64,000 nt of DNA from Andalucia godoyi And28 (GCA_009859145.1 VRVR01000003.1:319315-383314); one strand, 5' to 3'; shown: positions 33,317 to 60,605, numbered from the stretch's first letter. Notes: a model not told the origin generated them from the letters alone. Numbers and translations: made by a program.

Positions 33317-33400
33317 GTTCGCGTTCATTGTACATAGCCATCGCTGACGATGCATCGTCAATCGGTGTTACAACCCCGAAAACGGGGCAGGCCCCAACAC
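33317..33400 (-). ncRNA. Putative omegaRNA scaffold of the remnant at 33.3-33.7 kb
   Basis: GGCC/GGCU closing stem, CCCCG-UUUU-CGGGG hairpin (33374-33387), perfect palindrome TGACGATGCATCGTCA (33345-33360), and the motif CAATGAACGCGAAC. Confidence 0.6.
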
Positions 33401-33690
33401 GCACTTCGGCGTTCGTAAGATCAGTGTTGCGCGCACCACCGTCCCATAATCACGATCGATCGATCCGTCATCCGACATGCACACCGTGGACATGTGAAAA
33501 AGGTCTTTGTACCCACCGAAGGGACGGGTGAATCATGTGCCACGCAGTTCCCTGAACTCTTGTCCTTTGGTGCAACAATTGCTGTTGAAACTCACCTTGC
33601 CATTCTGTCGAGACGATGATGCACGATGCGAGGTTGCACGTCTTACAGTGTTGCTCCTTTGATTTCTGACGTAAAGAAAGTTTCTTGCGG
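33317..33690 (-). mobile_element. Decayed Fanzor2/IS607-TnpB-like remnant (C-terminal Zn finger, RuvC-III and 3' structured end)
   Basis: Across frameshifts it reads GNC..IHPSL-GG-TKTF(F)TCPRC (to 33481), IDRDY (33460-33446) and GARNT.L.NA (from 33437), followed by gttggggcctgcccc. Confidence 0.8.
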
Positions 33691-33801: not shown

Positions 33802-35622
33802 ATGCGATGGTATCTGCTTGAAAGTGCATCATGGACGAAAGTAGTTGATCCACAACTGGCAAGCCAGCACGCTGTGTGCCCGGCGCTTCTTACGCTCTCT
33901 GAGTCCTTGGACAGTGGCCTTCCGTTCGACCGTGCAATGATTCCCTTTCTCAATGATTCTGCAGGACGACAGCCTGTCGTCTTTACTTCGGTTCAATGTC
34001 TATCCAGCAGCACGCGCTGGAAAGGCACCGATATGAACGTCTTTGCAGAAACGTGCGCACGCTGGCTTGGAATTCCTGCAGTGAACCACGATTGGACGTT
34101 TTGTTTTGTGCGTCGTGACACGGTGCAGGGTACGTGCTCGATTCCTTCGGAACTGATTACAGGTCCTGATGCATACTCGCTTGAATCCTGGAGTCGCCAG
34201 TTTCCAGTCACGAAGACCTTGCAGTCCGTGTTTCAGTCCATCCAAATGTACATCACAACCTGTCTGCAGCATGTTTTGGCGATCTCCAATGTCCTGCAGC
34301 GCGAATTCAGAGTCAGCGTTGGTGATTTTGCAGAGTTGAAACTCGTTCGTCGAGCCTTCATTCACTCTTCTTGGGGAAATGTCTTTGAAGGAGGCGATGC
34401 AAACTATGAAAAGTTGGAATTTCTCGGAGATTCCGTTCTCCTGTTCTCCCTGGCACTGTTGCAAATCGAATCGTTTGCGCTGCACGGGGTAGATGTCGCG
34501 TGGCAGTACGTTCAAAATCTGTCACGGAACGATGTTCTCGCAGCTGCAGCCAGCCGATTAGGGTTTTCAAAACTCTTACTGCACGCTCTTCCCAAGGCCA
34601 AGCTGGACATGCAGCCTTCCAAGGTGCTTGCAGATACGTTTGAATCACTACTCGGCGCGCTGTTCCAGATCGTCGGTCTGAAGCAGTGCGTTGCAATCGT
34701 TCGTCAATGTATCTGGGACCACCGCGATTCGGCTTTCGGTCATATCGCTCCATGTAGGACGCTCGCTGCTGCTGCCTCAACTCCTCCTCTTCCTCTTCCT
34801 CTTCCTACTCCTCTTCCTCTTCCTACTCCTCTTCCTGCTGTTCCTGCTGTTCCTGCTGTTCCTGCTGTTCCTGCTGTTCCTGCTGTTCCTGCTGTTCCTG
34901 CTGTTCCTGCTGCTGCTGATTCTCTTCCTACTAGTACTACGACTTTGGAAATTGTTGGGGCAATTCCATCTTGTATTGCTCCGTGGAAAGCAGAAATGGA
35001 GTCCGCCATGCGGCCGGCAGATGCGTGTGTTCGGTGCTGGCTCAAGTTTTTGCGGATACCGATATTGGAGACGACCCGTCTTGAAGAGGCGATTCCCACG
35101 GGTATCTTACACTGGGATTTCCCGTGTGCATCGGAAATCCGACACGACTTTCGTGATCCATTTCGAAAGGACGCTCGGGTGCCCCGCAATCCGTTGGGTG
35201 CATTTCATCTGATGCGACTTGTCGGAAAGTGTTATCTGCGGTGCGGAGTCGCGTGGCACCTGTATTCAAAGCACTCCAAGCTTTCGGTTTCATCTTGGAC
35301 AGAGGCACTGCGGTTCTTTCAGCGTGAAGGGTTCCTAGTAGTGAGCGATTTTCTACCGTTGACACTCTCTTCTGGCGATTCCCCGCCTGCCGGATGGCAT
35401 GTCAGTCAGCAAACATTTGCGGCGTTCGAGTGTTTGCAGAGTCTTGTCGGCTGGACGTGCGCTTCTTCGTTGCAAGATATTCTGGAATCCGGGTGCCACG
35501 ACACTTTTAAAAGGGGATCCACGCTGTTCTCGCATCCTCTCCTGTACCCTGGAATCAACCCGTCTGCTTTGACCAAGAAGCGTATCGGCAATTCGGGGGT
35601 GTTTTTCACATATTCAACATGA
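33802..35622 (+). CDS. RNase III-domain protein (minimal Dicer/Drosha-like; one intact and one degenerate RNase III domain)
   Basis: AFIHSS, YEKLEFLGDSVL and KVLADTFESLLGA in domain 1. Degenerate second domain HLMRLVGKCYL..WHLYSKH..FECLQSLVG. Confidence 0.8.
   Translation: MRWYLLESASWTKVVDPQLASQHAVCPALLTLSESLDSGLPFDRAMIPFLNDSAGRQPVVFTSVQCLSSSTRWKGTDMNVFAETCARWLGIPAVNHDWTFCFVRRDTVQGTCSIPSELITGPDAYSLESWSRQFPVTKTLQSVFQSIQMYITTCLQHVLAISNVLQREFRVSVGDFAELKLVRRAFIHSSWGNVFEGGDANYEKLEFLGDSVLLFSLALLQIESFALHGVDVAWQYVQNLSRNDVLAAAASRLGFSKLLLHALPKAKLDMQPSKVLADTFESLLGALFQIVGLKQCVAIVRQCIWDHRDSAFGHIAPCRTLAAAASTPPLPLPLPTPLPLPTPLPAVPAVPAVPAVPAVPAVPAVPAVPAAADSLPTSTTTLEIVGAIPSCIAPWKAEMESAMRPADACVRCWLKFLRIPILETTRLEEAIPTGILHWDFPCASEIRHDFRDPFRKDARVPRNPLGAFHLMRLVGKCYLRCGVAWHLYSKHSKLSVSSWTEALRFFQREGFLVVSDFLPLTLSSGDSPPAGWHVSQQTFAAFECLQSLVGWTCASSLQDILESGCHDTFKRGSTLFSHPLLYPGINPSALTKKRIGNSGVFFTYST
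34834..34905 (+). repeat. (CCTGCTGTT)8 coding minisatellite encoding (PAV)8
   Basis: Perfect 9-nt tandem repeat in the linker between the two RNase III domains, preceded by PLP/PTP repeats. Confidence 0.93.
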
Positions 35623-37496: not shown

Positions 37497-37600
37497 AGCA
37501 TGTGCGAAATCATTGCTGGCCATACCTATTCGGTCTTGCATCGAAACTGAATGTGAACTCAATTCAGAATGGGGGTAGGCCTCAGTACTGCGAATCGTTT
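37497..37600 (-). ncRNA. Putative omegaRNA scaffold of the remnant at 37.5-37.9 kb
   Basis: GGCCUACC/GGUAUGGCC stem (37574-37581 with 37518-37526), CUGAAU..AUUCAG hairpin (37547-37567), and the motif CAATGATTTCGCAC. It overlaps the ORF 3' end. Confidence 0.62.
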
Positions 37601-37900
37601 TTCTAATAGATACCTGTTGTGCACACCATTCCGACCTCTCGATCCAAACGATGCCGGACATGACAGGCAGCGGAACACTTTATTTTCGCCGAGCCTCGCA
37701 TGAATGCCGCCACAAAGTCCACATATCTTGGAGGTGGACTCCTCTCTCTGCGCCTTTGGCGAACGAAACCTCGCTTCGAATTTGTGGTTTGGAATTTGGA
37801 TCCTTGTCCTTCTTTGCCAGGTTCGACTCGTACGCTTTCGATAAACCGCGAATACCGTCATTGGGCACGTCGTAGAGCACACGTCTTTCAGCCACGGGGG
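37497..37900 (-). mobile_element. Internally deleted Fanzor2/IS607-TnpB-like remnant
   Basis: PWLKDV/(L)YDVPNDGIRGLSKAYESNLAKK/PNHKFEARFRSPK (N-terminal region) is fused directly to EESTSKICGLCGGIHARLGENKVFRCLSC..SRGRNGVHN (Zn finger and RuvC-III, with DRD degraded to SRG). Confidence 0.88.
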
Positions 37901-38250
37901 TTGGGCTGGGTTGGGTTGGCTTTTTTTTTCTTTTTCTTTTTCTTTATCACAACGTCGGAGTCGGCATTGAGCAAGAGTATACAGAGGGGATTTGAGGCGA
38001 GATCATTTTTGTTGGGTGAAATACAGAAAGAAGAAGAACGAATGACCGCCGCCTTTTTTTTTTTTGCGATTGCGATACTTTGACATTCTTCGTTTTTATC
38101 GAATTTAATGTTTAAATAGATTAAAAAAGAAAAAAAAAGAAAAGCAAAAGCAAAAGCAATTGGTCAAAGAAGCATTGTGCACTTAGAAGCGCAGCAATGG
38201 TTGGTGTCTTTTCGCTTGACACGGACGATAAGGAATGCTTGCAAAAAATG

Positions 38251-38598: not shown

Positions 38599-40023
38599 AT
38601 GTCTTCGTCGATGGTGAATCGAGAGTTGTTTAGGACTACGATTTGCGTGTCTGCAATTCGCACACCTGCTTCTGTGTGCAACGAGGTTGTAAAGTCTCTT
38701 CGCGGAAGTCTGATTCGCCGAAAGCACATTCGAACAGTCCACGATGACATGCATGTATGTGCTTTTCCTCTTTCCTTTTTTCTGTGTCAATTCGACTGAG
38801 AAAGAACTGGTCACCGTGTGACTAATGCAAAGGGAGTCTTTTTGGACGACAAAATTTCATGGTTTTGGTTCTTTCTTTTAAATTTTAATCTCGCTTTTTT
38901 ATTTGGTTTTTTTATTTTATGTTTTATTTGGAGGCTGACGAATTAGGATGCATCAAAGAAAGTGATACTCTTGTCGGAAACTGTGAGTGATGCTGCATCG
39001 ATTCCTGCTGCTGCACAGACGTTGATTGCGCAGCATTCGCTGGAGATAGTACCAAGGTATGAAGTCCAGCTTTCGTATGAGAACTTTTCGACAGAAGAGG
39101 TGCTGAGGAAATTGTTGCCAGCTGGTTCCGACCATCCGTCGAGCTTTGAAATCGTAGGGCACATTGCGCATCTTAATCTTCGCGAGCACTTTTATCCGTT
39201 TCAGAACATCATTGGTCAGGTTTTGCTTGATAAGAACCCGTCGCTGCGAACGGTGGTGAACAAACTCGGAACGATTGACACGCAGTTCCGAGAATTCAAG
39301 ATGGATGTCATTGCTGGTGACGACGACTTTCTTGTCAAGGACCACCACGAGCAAGGGTGTTCCTTCTCGTTTGACTATTCCAAGGTGTACTGGAATTCGC
39401 GACTTTCGATGGAGCACGAGCGACTTGTATCGATGGTCCCCGTCAAGGCAGTCGTTTGTGACATGTTTGCCGGTGTTGGGCCGTTTGCGATTCCAGCAGC
39501 TCGCAACCGATCCTGCACAGTCTACGCAAACGACTTGAACCCGAATTCATATGAATGGCTCAAAGAAAATGCACGGAAAAACAAGATTGAGACGCTTGTC
39601 AAGTGCTTCAATTTGGACGCACGAGAGTTTGCAAAGCACGTGTTTGCAGAGAGGAGGATTGATGCGGACCATGTCATCATGAATCTCCCTGCCTCGTCAG
39701 TCGAGTTTCTGGATGTGTTCAGAGGACTCTTTGCACCAACCAAGCAAAAGCTGCCGGTGATCCACTGTTATACTTTTGCGAGGGGCGAGAATCCAGAGAG
39801 CGAGGCGGTCAAGAATGTGGAGACCCTCATGGGATTCCCAAACATTCCAAACATGCAAACACACAACGTCCGCGATGTTGCTCCCAACAAGCACATGATC
39901 TGCGTATCGTTTCCGCTTCCCAAAGAATACGCCTGCGCCCATTCATCGCCCTCTAATGCTCCTCTAGACTCGGAGTCCACGGCCGTCCAAGAGCCATCTT
40001 CCAAACGCCCTCGATCGGACTGA
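38599..40023 (+). CDS. TRM5: tRNA (guanine37-N1)-methyltransferase Trm5, 2 exons
   Basis: Exon 38599-38754, intron 38755-38946 (gtatgt..ctgac..ttag), exon 38947-40023. Motifs SFEIVGHIAHLNL, FDYSKVYWNSRL, DMFAGVGPFA, NDLNP and MNLP. Confidence 0.92.
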
Positions 40024-40225: not shown

Positions 40226-40735
40226 TCAATAGTTCTTCTTTTTCTTCACGGCCGAAACTGGTGCATGTTTGCTGGAATGCTGCTTTCTTTCGACAGCGGA
40301 CTTACTGGCGACCGGTCCACTCTTGACGACGCGCTTGTTATTCTTGGCATCTGGCTTTGCACGCTGCACAAGTCTTGCTGATGCGTGACCATTCGACGCA
40401 CTAATGCTCGTGTTCACAGCGGTACTGGCAGTGTTTGACGCAGCAGCATTCGACAGAGGCGAATCGGAATCATCTTCTTTCAAAGCCAACCGAATATAAA
40501 AACCCATGACGACAAAAGAAACGAGCATTGCAACGATTATCGATGGGGCATCTGCTTGCCCGTGAACTTGGTACTCATCGAAATGATCAGGAAGAATAAA
40601 ATACGGATAAATGACTTCGCGAACAAGGAAAAACACTGCAAATGGAGCAATCCACAGCAACGCAGAGTACAAAACAAACGACTTCACCACCTTTTGGTTT
40701 TGCGGAACAGATAGCACTTCAGCGAAACGCCCCAT
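40226..40735 (-). CDS. VMA21: V-ATPase assembly factor VMA21-like
   Basis: Two TM helices (SFVLYSALLWIAPFAVFF; SIIVAMLVSFVVMGFYIRLA-LKED) and a C-terminal di-lysine-like KKKKNY. Confidence 0.72.
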   Translation of the reverse strand: MGRFAEVLSVPQNQKVVKSFVLYSALLWIAPFAVFFLVREVIYPYFILPDHFDEYQVHGQADAPSIIVAMLVSFVVMGFYIRLALKEDDSDSPLSNAAASNTASTAVNTSISASNGHASARLVQRAKPDAKNNKRVVKSGPVASKSAVERKQHSSKHAPVSAVKKKKNY

Positions 40736-40800: not shown

Positions 40801-41293
40801 TTGAAAAGCTGGAGCATGAGCAAAGAAGCCCAAAGACTTGGAACGTATCAAGGAGCCTCGAGTGTGCAGGAGACACTCAGTAAAGCAGCGATGACACTGC
40901 AGAGTGGAGTTCGCAATTCGATGCTCACAGACAACTATCAATACTCCTCGATGGGCGCCGACGGCAGCATACGGGGCATCTACTTGGTTCAACGCCTACA
41001 CTATACACTGAACATCCGTATCTACGAATAGATATCCATATTCAATCCTGCATCCCGTTGCCGCGAAGGGGATCGGCTCCCAACACGCCTCACGGCGTTC
41101 TTCAGATGAATGTTCCGCGCTCCGCTCCCAGTCTCGATCAATCTGTGAGCCACTTTCTCAGCGCGACACGTTGTTCCTGCGAAGGGTGCATTTTTTTGAT
41201 TCTGACGGCCCTAGCAGCAGGCGTAGTGACACGTGATCTCTTAGGAGGTCTGCGGGACCTAGGAGGCCCTGCATCGATCGGCGTAGGCGTCAT
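40801..41293 (-). mobile_element. MITE-like Fanzor2/IS607-TnpB derivative with almost the whole nuclease ORF deleted
   Basis: ATG at 41293 opens MTPTPIDAGPPRSRRPPKRSRVTTPAARAVRIKKMHPSQEQRVALRKWL (TnpB N-terminal K-I-R-x-Y-P-x-x-E-Q..L..W motif). This joins at about 41145 to QIDRDW/SGARNIHLKN (RuvC-III). The right end at ttttcaa (40801) is tentative. Confidence 0.85.
40909..41085 (-). ncRNA. Putative omegaRNA scaffold of the element at 40.8-41.3 kb
   Basis: ttgggagccgatcccc motif, AUCCC/GGGAU stem, long hairpin UGAAUAU-GGA-UAUCUA-UUCG-UAGAUA-CGG-AUGUUCA (41044-41009), and the motif CATCGAATTGCGAAC. Confidence 0.65.
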
Positions 41294-42292
41294 CCCAGCG
41301 CGCTCACGCCCATATTTGAATTAATAAAGTGAAACCAACGAATGATAGAACAGATGGCTACGGATGCTGCGTTAAAGAGTGTCGAAAATGCAGAGCCTGT
41401 GTCACCGGCTGAATTTTGGCCGAGCGTGCGTAAGCACGAATTCCTGTGAAGCAAACGTGCTAGTGTCGGCCAGTATCGACCGTGTCTGTTTATGTATACT
41501 TCCGTATGCATGACAATGACGAGTTATTAGTATTCAACAGCGATGCATGCTGGTTTCGGAAGATCCGTCGCTCGTGAGCGTGTCACCAAAAACGAAAACC
41601 GCAGCGACCTCTCGCCAACAGCAATGGAAAACAACAACGACAAAAACCGCGATGCATGTCTCGCATGTTCAAAACAGAAAAAGTCGGTTGGCGAGCGTGT
41701 CGGCAGTGCAAATGGCGGAGAAGCCTTTGTTGGTAACCTGGTGTTTCTGCGGATCATCTGGTTTCTTCCAAACAGGCAATGAGCGTCACCAGTAAAGGAA
41801 ACGGCTCTGCAAAGATCGCAGCTGTTTAGGAAACTGCACGTGGTGCAATCTTCCGGACCGATTTGATGAGTTTGCTGGGATGCGACTCTACAAGTCGTTC
41901 TTGTTATTCCTGTTCAATGCGGTGTGCTGCGCACCGTCGCATCTTTTGAGTTCGCGATTGCTGACAGTTCGCCGACAGGATTCAAAGCCCGATCTGTTGT
42001 CCGCCCGATCTGCTGCGACGTGATCACTCCATGCATGTCGTCCATTTGCCGGACTGTCGCATTCCAACACATTTCGCAGGTTGTCGCTGTCAGAATTGCT
42101 ACAAAAAAATGCGCCGCAAAATGCCGCACGAAGAGCGTTCCCGCATCCAAAGCTCGCACTTTCCCACATTATGGCATTCCTCCAAACTCTATTCCCCAAA
42201 GAAAGTGCACTCACAACAAGGTTACTCATCTTTTTTCTGTTGTCGTTCTTCCCGCCGCTGCATTTTTTGTTCAAGCCTGGCTTTGCAAACAA

Positions 42293-42874
42293 ATGGGAAA
42301 CTGTCACGCTTCTTCGTATTGCGGAAACACGCCGAGTCCAACGTACGACGAACTCATTTTGCTAGCGCGCATACAGCAGCAGCAGATAAACCGAGGGCGC
42401 GTATCTCCAGTATCCTCAACGGCAACTTCCAAGAGGGCGTCATCAGAACCCATTTTGAACCGGCAGCCCGACGAGACGCTGGTGGAAAAGTCGCGGAGCA
42501 TGCCGAGCATGTTACCCGCACGCGATTCAGAAGCCTCTAAAACAAAAGCGTATGTCGCCGAGCGATGTCTGCAGGGAGCCTGCGCACAACCAGCCTCGCC
42601 ACCGCGGCTGCTTTCAATTACATGCTCCCCCATTCACAGCCGGTCCGACGATCTAGATGATGTCATCGAGGAAGCAGTGTTTTCCAGTTGTGGGTCACCT
42701 GTGCAACACGGGTTCATGAACATTCCAGGGTGCACATCGCCGGATGACCGCTGCGAAGAGGCAACAGATTGCAGCACGGATTCGTTTGTCTCGGACGTGT
42801 CCGTCTCGCTGAAGCGTTGCAGAAGAGTTCGGTTCTCCGACAGCGAGATGTCGGTGGCCACAATTGCATACTGA
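42293..42874 (+). CDS. Hypothetical protein with a possible N-myristoylation start (MGNC)
   Basis: In-frame ATG within ORF 41924-42874; low-complexity sequence ending RRVRFSD, an RVxF PP1-docking-like motif. Confidence 0.5.
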   Translation: MGNCHASSYCGNTPSPTYDELILLARIQQQQINRGRVSPVSSTATSKRASSEPILNRQPDETLVEKSRSMPSMLPARDSEASKTKAYVAERCLQGACAQPASPPRLLSITCSPIHSRSDDLDDVIEEAVFSSCGSPVQHGFMNIPGCTSPDDRCEEATDCSTDSFVSDVSVSLKRCRRVRFSDSEMSVATIAY

Positions 42875-60533: not shown

Positions 60534-60605
60534 AGGGCTGAGGCGGAATTGAACCACCGACCTCTTGATCTGCAGTCAAATGCTCTACCACTGAGCTACC
60601 AGCCC
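60534..60605 (-). tRNA. trnC: tRNA-Cys(GCA)
   Basis: GGGCTGGTAGCTCAGTGGTAGAGCATTTGACTGCAGATCAAGAGGTCGGTGGTTCAATTCCGCCTCAGCCCT: cloverleaf, GCA anticodon, U73 discriminator, with a T6 Pol III terminator about 10 nt downstream. Confidence 0.96.

Follow-up and report, generated by a model that had tools for sequence, protein, structure and literature searches.

A 1.2-kb intergenic region in the nuclear genome of Andalucia godoyi, on VRVR01000003.1 of assembly GCA_009859145.1, contains a probable Fanzor2-like remnant, which we refer to as relic B. It was analyzed within a window of 64,000 nucleotides (nt) of this sequence (319315-383314), and all positions given below are counted from the first letter of the window. 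Fanzor2 is a eukaryotic RNA-guided RuvC nuclease derived from IS607 TnpB, and jakobids, the group of A. godoyi, are a deep-branching lineage of Discoba noted for a bacterial-like mitochondrial genome. The region lies between a VMA21-like gene and an open reading frame (ORF) without assigned family, and its features, listed in the direction of the minus strand, are as follows.

41924..42874, plus strand: ORF without assigned family, one flank of the intergenic region
41138..41293, minus strand: 51-aa ORF, MTPTPIDAGPPRSRRPPKRSRVTTPAARAVRIKKMHPSQEQRVALRKWLTD, including its TGA stop at 41140..41138; putative N-terminal remnant of a Fanzor2-like gene
41231..41266, minus strand: basic patch resembling a nuclear localization signal (NLS), PPRSRRPPKRSR, ORF residues 10-21, as read from the sequence
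41147..41224, minus strand: first core motif, TPAARAVRIKKMHPSQEQRVALRKWL, at about profile positions 88-112, ending before the expected G..RWTYN
41143..41149, minus strand: putative deletion junction; the N-terminal part ends at Leu49 (CTC, 41149..41147) and the C-terminal part starts from CAG/ATT at 41145/41142, in another frame
41145..41128, minus strand: QIDRDW, directly after the ORF and in a different frame
41126..41097, minus strand: SGARNIHLKN, in a third frame, unlike that of the ORF and that of QIDRDW
41100..41145, minus strand: putative RuvC-III remnant, QIDRDW(+G at 41127)SGARNIHLK, profile positions 443-469
41022..41099, minus strand: C-terminal tail, NAVRRVGSRSPSRQRDAGLNMDIYS, in the SGARNI frame, ending with UAG at 41024..41022; its DNA is homologous to relic C (see below)
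41008..41045, minus strand: interrupted hairpin, UUGAAUAU..UAUCUA-UUCG-UAGAUA..AUGUUCAG, with the loop at 41028..41025
40994..41007, minus strand: TGTATAGTGTAGGC, the last block common to three relics in a three-way alignment (relics A and C: TGTACAATG[C/A]ACGC)
40226..40735, minus strand: VMA21-like gene, the other flank

Acanthamoeba castellanii Fanzor2 proteins ACa-1 and ACa-2, taken from the supplementary proteins of Bao & Jurka 2013 and tabulated there as Fanzor2 of the IS607-type group (PMC3627910), served as seeds. A Fanzor2 profile of 483 positions was built from these two seeds and 120 of their relatives (122 proteins, cited here by numbers such as P0141), and all 2094 stop-to-stop fragments from the six frames of the window were scanned with filters off. 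The fragment containing the 51-aa ORF ranked second among the 2094, matching positions 84-112 of 483 with 6.7 bits. When the exact ORF was compared with the 122 proteins by BLASTP, the best match was P0141 (residues 182-230, E = 1e-5), in which PPKKRRKK...KKKVKEKTPAEKAIRIR-LYPNEEQKQTLLKWI paired with PPRSRRPP...KRSRVTTPAARAVRIKKMHPSQEQRVALRKWL of the ORF. With SEG filtering and composition correction, E-values were 0.003-0.07 (0.003-0.016 for P0141), and all eight top proteins matched the ORF at the same core-start motif. ORF residues 24-49 aligned with this motif in P0141, P0201, P0182, P0132, P0128, P0129 and others. The motif (R.yPt.eQ...L..W.G..RwtYN, the region of Pfam HTH_OrfB_IS605) is present and is cut before G..RWTYN. 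In this alignment TPAARAVRIKKMHPSQEQRVALRKWL pairs with TPAEKAIRIR-LYPNEEQKQTLLKWI at the start of the Fanzor2 core, and tblastn placed residues 206-230 of P0141 on 41224..41147.

Permutation tests against the 122 Fanzor2/TnpB proteins pointed in the same direction. The exact ORF reached a Smith-Waterman score of 76 vs 44.2±4.5 for shuffled sequences, a value attained by 0 of 150 shuffles. The 26-aa motif by itself scored 68 vs 36.8±3.8 (0 of 150), and its mean over the ten best proteins was reached by 0.7% of shuffles. In addition, the basic patch of the ORF aligned with the patch PPKKRRKK...KKKVKEK of P0141, located just upstream of the core, and similar basic patches were observed in P0143, P0137 and ACa-2. 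The patch may have functioned as an NLS.

Directly downstream of the ORF, IDRDW and SGARNIHLK correspond to the RuvC-III motif DRD.NGA.NI, with the exact spacing of the family once the G at 41127 is removed; as sequenced, the motif is split between frames. This extra G, within a GGG run, parts DRDW from SGARNI, and its removal restores a single DRDWSGARNI motif. The corrected peptide DRDWSGARNIHLK was identical at 11 of 13 positions to ACa-1 residues 564-577 (DRDWNGARNIWLK; the C-terminal end of ACa-1 reads ...LFWCEQCGFRTDRDWNGARNIWLKF) and scored 61 vs 27.5±3.8, with a maximum of 48 in 1000 shuffles. Since ACa-1 had been chosen by motif from about 100 proteins, this score is to be discounted, and the 120 relatives were collected for that reason. 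In the permutation test against the resulting 122 proteins, the one-base-removed peptide IDRDWSGARNIHLK, the counterpart of ACa-1 DRDWNGARNIWLK, scored 65 vs 39.8±4.1 (0 of 150). On the Fanzor2 profile the corrected C-terminal peptide matched positions 443-469 with 18 bits (E = 1e-4, Z = 2094), and the uncorrected SGARNI frame ranked ninth among the matches of the 2094 fragments.

The N-terminal part stops at Leu49, the point where its relatives continue with G..RWTYN, and the C-terminal part begins with QIDRD (41145/41142 onward), at profile position 443. The intervening positions 113-442, with LDPGVR (RuvC-I), FETSqM (RuvC-II) and the CxxC..CxxC finger, are absent. No match to the RuvC-I aspartate or RuvC-II glutamate segments was found in any frame of the intergenic region by profile or tblastn searches, and neither Pfam nor the Fanzor2 profile detected at relic B the CxxC...CxxC zinc finger (PF07282) that precedes RuvC-III. 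In place of an uninterrupted ORF of about 400-700 aa, there are 51 codons, a TGA at the junction and C-terminal pieces in two other frames. No nuclease can result from this arrangement: the two remnants occupy different frames, a TGA interrupts the reading where they meet, and a further 1-nt indel is present.

A preliminary description of this locus had proposed a 51-aa ORF (41293-41138) with a basic stretch followed by a motif, directly abutted by QIDRDW and SGARNIHLKN, and had ascribed it to a Fanzor-type element without the REC, RuvC-I, RuvC-II and zinc-finger region. The ORF and both peptides are present as described, each peptide in another frame. A Fanzor-type origin, specified here as Fanzor2/IS607-TnpB-like, is supported by the Fanzor2 profile, BLASTP and permutation tests, and the proposed loss corresponds to profile positions 113-442. 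The suggested joining of the N-terminus to the RuvC-III tail is correct with regard to the order of segments (positions 84-112 followed by 443-469) but not as a continuous reading frame, as the parts are out of frame and a TGA occurs at the junction.

We consider relic B probably to be a dead, decayed Fanzor2-type pseudogene relic in the nuclear genome of A. godoyi. A single large internal deletion removed about 330 profile positions, comprising the zinc finger and what remained of WED/REC, as well as the RuvC-I aspartate and the RuvC-II glutamate. It spared ~50 codons at the start (NLS-like basic patch and the initial strand/helix motif RIKKMHPSQEQRVALRKWL), ~40 codons at the end (IDRDW-SGARNIHLK and tail) and a 3′ stretch of some 100-150 nt. 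Relic B would then appear to be a neutral leftover without present function in a long divergent intergenic region, contributing at most upstream sequence for the VMA21-like gene. The stretch 40801..~40990, upstream of this gene, had no homology to anything in our searches.

Several observations weigh against this interpretation. In the unbiased six-frame scan, the N-terminal fragment had only E = 0.35. The C-terminal match depends on a 1-nt correction picked by the analyst, and each of the two uncorrected C-terminal frames alone was not significant in the permutation test against the 122 proteins. ACa-1 was found by querying the supplement with the same motif strings, a selection effect of roughly 100-fold. 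Since the indel lies in a GGG run and the assembly is 454-based (PMC7050145), it may be a sequencing error. Pfam scans at E≤10, in which HMMER filters limit visibility above E ~0.1, assigned no family (including PF12323) to the ORF, the corrected C-terminal peptide or a fused 91-aa peptide. Pfam, NCBIfam and PHROGs scans that covered the ORF, the corrected peptides and relic C yielded no TnpB match, and phmmer against PDB returned antibody noise only, even though the PDB sequences include TnpB and a chain of a mimivirus Fanzor2. A hidden Markov model (HMM) of ISDra2 type, based on 113 of 120 close homologues and applied both in full and split into N- and C-terminal sub-models, did not place relic B fragments among its top matches in the 2094 fragments. 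Finally, the absence of function is an inference.

Other general searches were likewise negative. The fused 91-aa chimera had no match in a word-indexed search of 5.8 billion protein clusters, and no pairwise Smith-Waterman alignment to ISDra2 TnpB fell where it would be expected. On the ISDra2-type HMM the corrected peptides were placed correctly, but with only ~2-6 bits and unremarkable ranks. The comparison with generic profiles suggested in the preliminary description (Pfam HTH_OrfB_IS605 and the zinc-ribbon/TNB model) yielded no match, whereas the Fanzor2-specific profile did. Judged by the generic profiles alone, the Fanzor interpretation would have been rejected.

Neighbouring intergenic regions contain two sister relics, likewise on the minus strand, at distances of 3.5 kb (relic A) and 7.7 kb (relic C) from relic B; none was found in the other 56 kb of the window.

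37541..37909, minus strand: relic A, the best-preserved Fanzor2 remnant, with a hairpin at 37568..37541
33318..33591, minus strand: relic C, with SSGNCVAH-x14-FTCPRC in one frame and IDRDY and GGARNTDL in two others, and a hairpin at 33361..33344

Relic A, flanked by a WD40 gene and the TYW2/TRM5 gene, contains a 147-codon open frame (38002..37562, minus strand), which is the best Fanzor2-profile fragment of the window (29 bits, E = 5e-8). In this frame, profile positions 148-199 (KFEARFRSPKAQRE; VLYDVPNDGIRGLSKAY in the neighbouring frame) are joined to 411-456 (ESTSKICGLCGGIHARLGENKVFRCLSCPASFGSRGRNGVHNRYL), and the DRD motif reads SRG. By tblastn, 53 proteins matched relic A (best E = 8.7e-9). 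In a relaxed tblastn search with the 122 proteins, relic A was matched by 66 and the 41100-41249 minus-strand bin of relic B by 62, compared with no more than 34 for background bins. The exact 147-aa frame was also searched against 1.84 billion representative proteins; 32 matched at E≤0.001 (best 2.5e-6), all via their C-terminal ends. The ten of these matches that were scanned all carry PF07282, most of them together with PF12323 and/or PF01385. PF07282 was also the sole Pfam family detected in the relic A frame itself, under the gathering score (E = 0.007).

Relic C is located between an ORF without assigned family and an RNase III-like gene. Its zinc finger is degenerate (CxxH..CxxC), and part of its IDRD comes from a GATCGATCG run. 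The corrected peptide matched profile positions 426-457 with 9 bits (E = 0.06), and the finger frame ranked 12th among the Fanzor2-profile matches. BLASTP aligned relic C with P0166 (E = 1e-3), and the exact frame-1 peptide gave p = 0.013 in the top-10 permutation test. A by-eye composite for relic C (GEF..QL etc.) scored under its own shuffles on a TnpB profile and was dropped as pareidolia, and a possible fourth relic at 31.7-32.0 kb was rejected, being without protein-level support.

At the DNA level, self-comparison of the window related ~33350..33495 to relic B on the same strand. This B-C homology extends over ~140 nt (local score 76 vs 27±2.7 for shuffles) and was also detected by nhmmer; A-C homology extends over ~250 nt (51 vs 27±3.6). 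The DRD strings of B and C, which occur in homologous DNA, therefore do not count as separate evidence. On the other hand, DNA homology connects relic A with relic C and relic C with relic B, so the Fanzor2 ancestry of relic B does not rest on short motifs alone. Five of the 12 best Fanzor2-profile matches fall within the three relic loci, which together make up ~1% of the sequence searched. These data bear on the possibility that there is no Fanzor ancestry at all, i.e., that the motifs arose by chance and the shared ~140 nt represents a small RNA gene or an intergenic repeat with no relation to Fanzor. Such an origin would be consistent with the negative generic-profile searches, with an IDRD derived in part from a GATCGATCG-like low-complexity string, and with the absence of an Rfam match at the relics, a result equally compatible with an undescribed RNA and with no RNA. 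However, the concentration of profile matches at three small loci argues against it, and the relic A matches to the TnpB family in the 1.84 billion proteins (2.5e-6, with PF07282 in 10 of 10 scanned), together with the A-C-B homology chain, bring it close to refutation. We attach scarcely any likelihood to it.

The B-C alignment also raises the question of whether the 51-aa ORF belongs to the relic. It continues ~30 nt upstream of the junction, to 41171, at ~70% identity, pairing the DNA of ..RVALRKWLTD in B with that of TCPRCACRMTD in C. Accordingly, the C-terminal part alone could be a Fanzor remnant and the ORF a chance frame whose 3′ end derives from zinc-finger-coding DNA, with no fusion involved; the basic low-complexity part of the ORF, which inflates uncorrected BLAST scores, would fit this view. 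However, the upstream extension alone is not significant (p ~0.2), and the stretch misfits the finger spacing in the C-terminal frame and fits the finger in no frame. Moreover, the 26-aa motif of the ORF exceeded all 150 shuffles (68 vs 36.8±3.8), and composition-corrected matches fell on the same N-terminal motif in eight of the eight top proteins. A chance origin of the ORF is therefore highly improbable in our judgment, and since the upstream stretch is insignificant and misfits the finger, the ORF is retained as the N-terminal remnant of the relic B pseudogene.

The three relics differ in their breakpoints. Relic A joins positions 199 and 411 (200-410 lost), relic B joins 112 and 443, and relic C retains only ~426-457, which implies that they do not represent copies of a single deletion derivative. 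Sequence identity among them is ~70-75% and confined to a stretch of ~140 nt, and no second copy of the relic B junction was found within the window. Each relic kept its 3′ end and lost a different internal segment, a pattern that would fit separate insertions decaying independently. The earlier proposal of a non-autonomous deletion derivative is thus not sustained, as no other copy in the window has the same junction, and the locus looks like a decayed relic. With regard to location, the intergenic regions of relics A and B are divergent and long (1.2-1.35 kb), and in both cases a minus-strand gene starts ~200-260 bp downstream of the 3′ end of the relic. The spacing of the relics (~3.5-4 kb, on one strand) could reflect local hopping, insertion preference or chance.

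Past RuvC-III, relics A, B and C share ~150 nt, which include GCC..CCCC, a similarly offset hairpin and a final block TGTAYARTG.ASGC. The hairpins of relics A and C have TGA...TCA arms, at an offset similar to that of the relic B hairpin. The final block (40994..41007 in relic B) is possibly the 3′ limit of homology, a lead drawn from three sequences; pattern scans of metagenome and viral contigs found nothing with this block. In relic B, the stop codon of the SGARNI frame (UAG, 41024..41022) lies within the 3′ arm of the hairpin. The UUCG loop is closed by an A-U pair and so differs from the canonical C(UUCG)G tetraloop, which is stable. The 56-nt fold of relic B is not unusually stable (-12.9 kcal/mol, z = -1.57, equalled by 17 of 200 dinucleotide shuffles), none of the three relic folds was better than shuffles (z from -1.8 to +0.6), and no covariation was seen in the three-sequence consensus (RNAalifold term -0.1). 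Rfam had no match at the relics.

The ends of the element were also sought. A candidate terminal inverted repeat (TIR; 40872-40889 / 41366-41383, 15 of 18 matches) was rejected, as 13% of shuffles were equal or better and the other relics had no counterpart. No target site duplication (TSD) was seen by eye at relic B, and no TnpA or resolvase remnant was found upstream of relics A and B. The preliminary description had envisaged a compact element keeping both ends and the guide scaffold. The UUCG hairpin it reported is present (41045..41008), but its role as a guide scaffold is without statistical or covariation support, and no termini can be defined, the sole candidate TIR being at chance level. 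Because neither ends nor fold and covariation support could be established, retention of both ends and the guide scaffold is unproven.

It could still be argued that relic B is a ghost-type non-autonomous Fanzor, whose 3′ ~150 nt still provides an omega RNA/reRNA for an intact Fanzor2 elsewhere and which may be mobilised in trans. The IS607 TnpB reRNA scaffold is ~150 nt (PMC10711439), which approximately matches the shared 3′ stretch of the relics, and all three relics have kept the 3′ end and a similarly offset hairpin while losing internal parts. ORF-less ghost loci with working omega RNAs have been documented in Spizellomyces punctatus (Saito et al. 2023, PMC10432273), and an intact Fanzor2 might reside, for example, in unassembled subtelomeric transposon-rich scaffolds. 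Several short subtelomeric scaffolds rich in transposon- and viral-like sequences were indeed omitted by the authors from the main A. godoyi assembly (PMC7050145). On the other side, the relics are only ~70-75% identical over ~140 nt with nothing shared outside, no fold exceeds shuffles and the consensus shows no covariation, and termini, TIR and TSD were not found. Furthermore, no intact Fanzor was found in the window, the 91-aa chimera had no match in the protein collection, and the differing deletion junctions indicate that there is no amplified family here. On balance, we regard a ghost-type element as unlikely. The broader proposal that the relics are retained orphan guide-RNA ("ghost" omega RNA) loci for an intact Fanzor2 elsewhere, or co-opted promoter/5′-untranslated-region modules, is distinctly unlikely. 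If true, it would mean that a Fanzor system survives mostly as RNA-only loci, in a genome that ranks among the most compact of free-living protists. Given that active ghost Fanzor loci are known in S. punctatus (PMC10432273), guide-scaffold retention, if true, would not be new in kind.

The draft nuclear genome of A. godoyi is compact (~20 Mb) and has few introns (PMC7050145). In Pfam scans, the large ORFs of the 64-kb window belonged to housekeeping families only (MCM8, TRM5/TYW2, VMA21, RNase III, kinases, WD40, dynein), and no intact TnpB/Fanzor gene was among them. Several additional features were observed in the window. The intergenic region of relic B contains, upstream of the relic, three loose copies of a ~21-nt motif, GTCACCAAAAACGAAAACCGC (41582-41805). 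The TYW2/TRM5-like gene (38599..40023, plus strand) has a single 192-nt GT..AG intron (38755-38946), and its recorded product length of 410 aa is obtained only with this intron. A perfect tandem repeat of nine 9-nt units, TTCCTGCTG (34832-34912), occurs in the RNase III-like ORF (33802..35622), adjoined by an 18-nt repeat (34791-34836); since both repeats lie within the ORF, they represent an in-frame low-complexity insert. The sole Rfam match of the window at the gathering threshold was a tRNA gene (60534-60605, minus strand, RF00005, 67.6 bits).

Our analysis adds a jakobid to the hosts of Fanzor2-type elements, at least with respect to activity in the past, and the literature searched contained no mention of Fanzor together with Andalucia. 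Fanzor2 is already known from Naegleria, likewise a member of Discoba, and Fanzor copies that are decayed or incomplete are common; the relics therefore add a taxon and an annotation but no mechanism. Generic TnpB models missed the relics wholly, and a clade-specific Fanzor2 profile recovered three of them within 8 kb. The number of Fanzor remnants in protist genomes has probably been underestimated.

Relic B can be compared with several known systems. Like Ds-like and MITE-like (miniature inverted-repeat transposable element) internal-deletion derivatives, it has kept its coding ends and lost the middle. However, such families have shared termini and multiple copies, neither of which was demonstrated for the A. 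godoyi relics with their three different breakpoints. The ghost Fz loci of S. punctatus (PMC10432273) resemble relic B in being ~0.5 kb and in having no working Fanzor ORF, with the region kept in which an omega RNA would be encoded. The 134 copies of the ghost Spu-1 family have a CA motif, conserved inverted repeats of 30 nt and omega RNAs shown experimentally to be active (PMC10432273), whereas A. godoyi has three diverged relics with differing deletions, no shared ends and no significant inverted repeat.

Among nucleases, the relics were not detected by the profile of ISDra2 (IS200/IS605) type, unlike by the IS607-type Fanzor2 profile. Fanzor2 proteins (ACa-1/ACa-2, NlovFz2 of Naegleria lovaniensis and ApmFz2 of mimivirus) contain the same basic patch followed by "..IR.yP..eQk.lL.kW" as relic B. 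Their RuvC-III signature is also alike (DRDWNGARNIWLK in ACa-1 vs DRDWSGARNIHLK in relic B), and their finger, EEYTSKTCGxCG..lGgsKvFkCpsC, is shared with relics A and C. Unlike these proteins, relic B is without ~70% of the protein and all catalytic motifs but one, is frame-broken and has undefined ends. The signatures by which the Fanzor lineage is defined, DPG and the alternative glutamate (PMC10711439), fall within the segment that relic B has lost. With regard to cyanobacterial IS607 TnpB ("pro-Fanzors") and TnpB-only insertion sequences, several of the best matches were bacterial TnpBs (P0201 and P0182 from Chloroflexi metagenome-assembled genomes, P0168 from Kamptonema), which have the N- and C-terminal motifs in common with the relic. 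P0148 was considered as a candidate full-length relative and set aside, as it is from another, non-Andalucia genome (GCA_040384145.1, JAWVHD010000085.1, 2268-4221); it lies directly downstream of a small resolvase-like gene, which is the IS607 TnpA-TnpB layout. Unlike bacterial TnpBs, the A. godoyi relics are located between eukaryotic nuclear genes, and the basic extension of the relic B ORF is similar to that of the eukaryote-type proteins P0141, P0143 and P0137.

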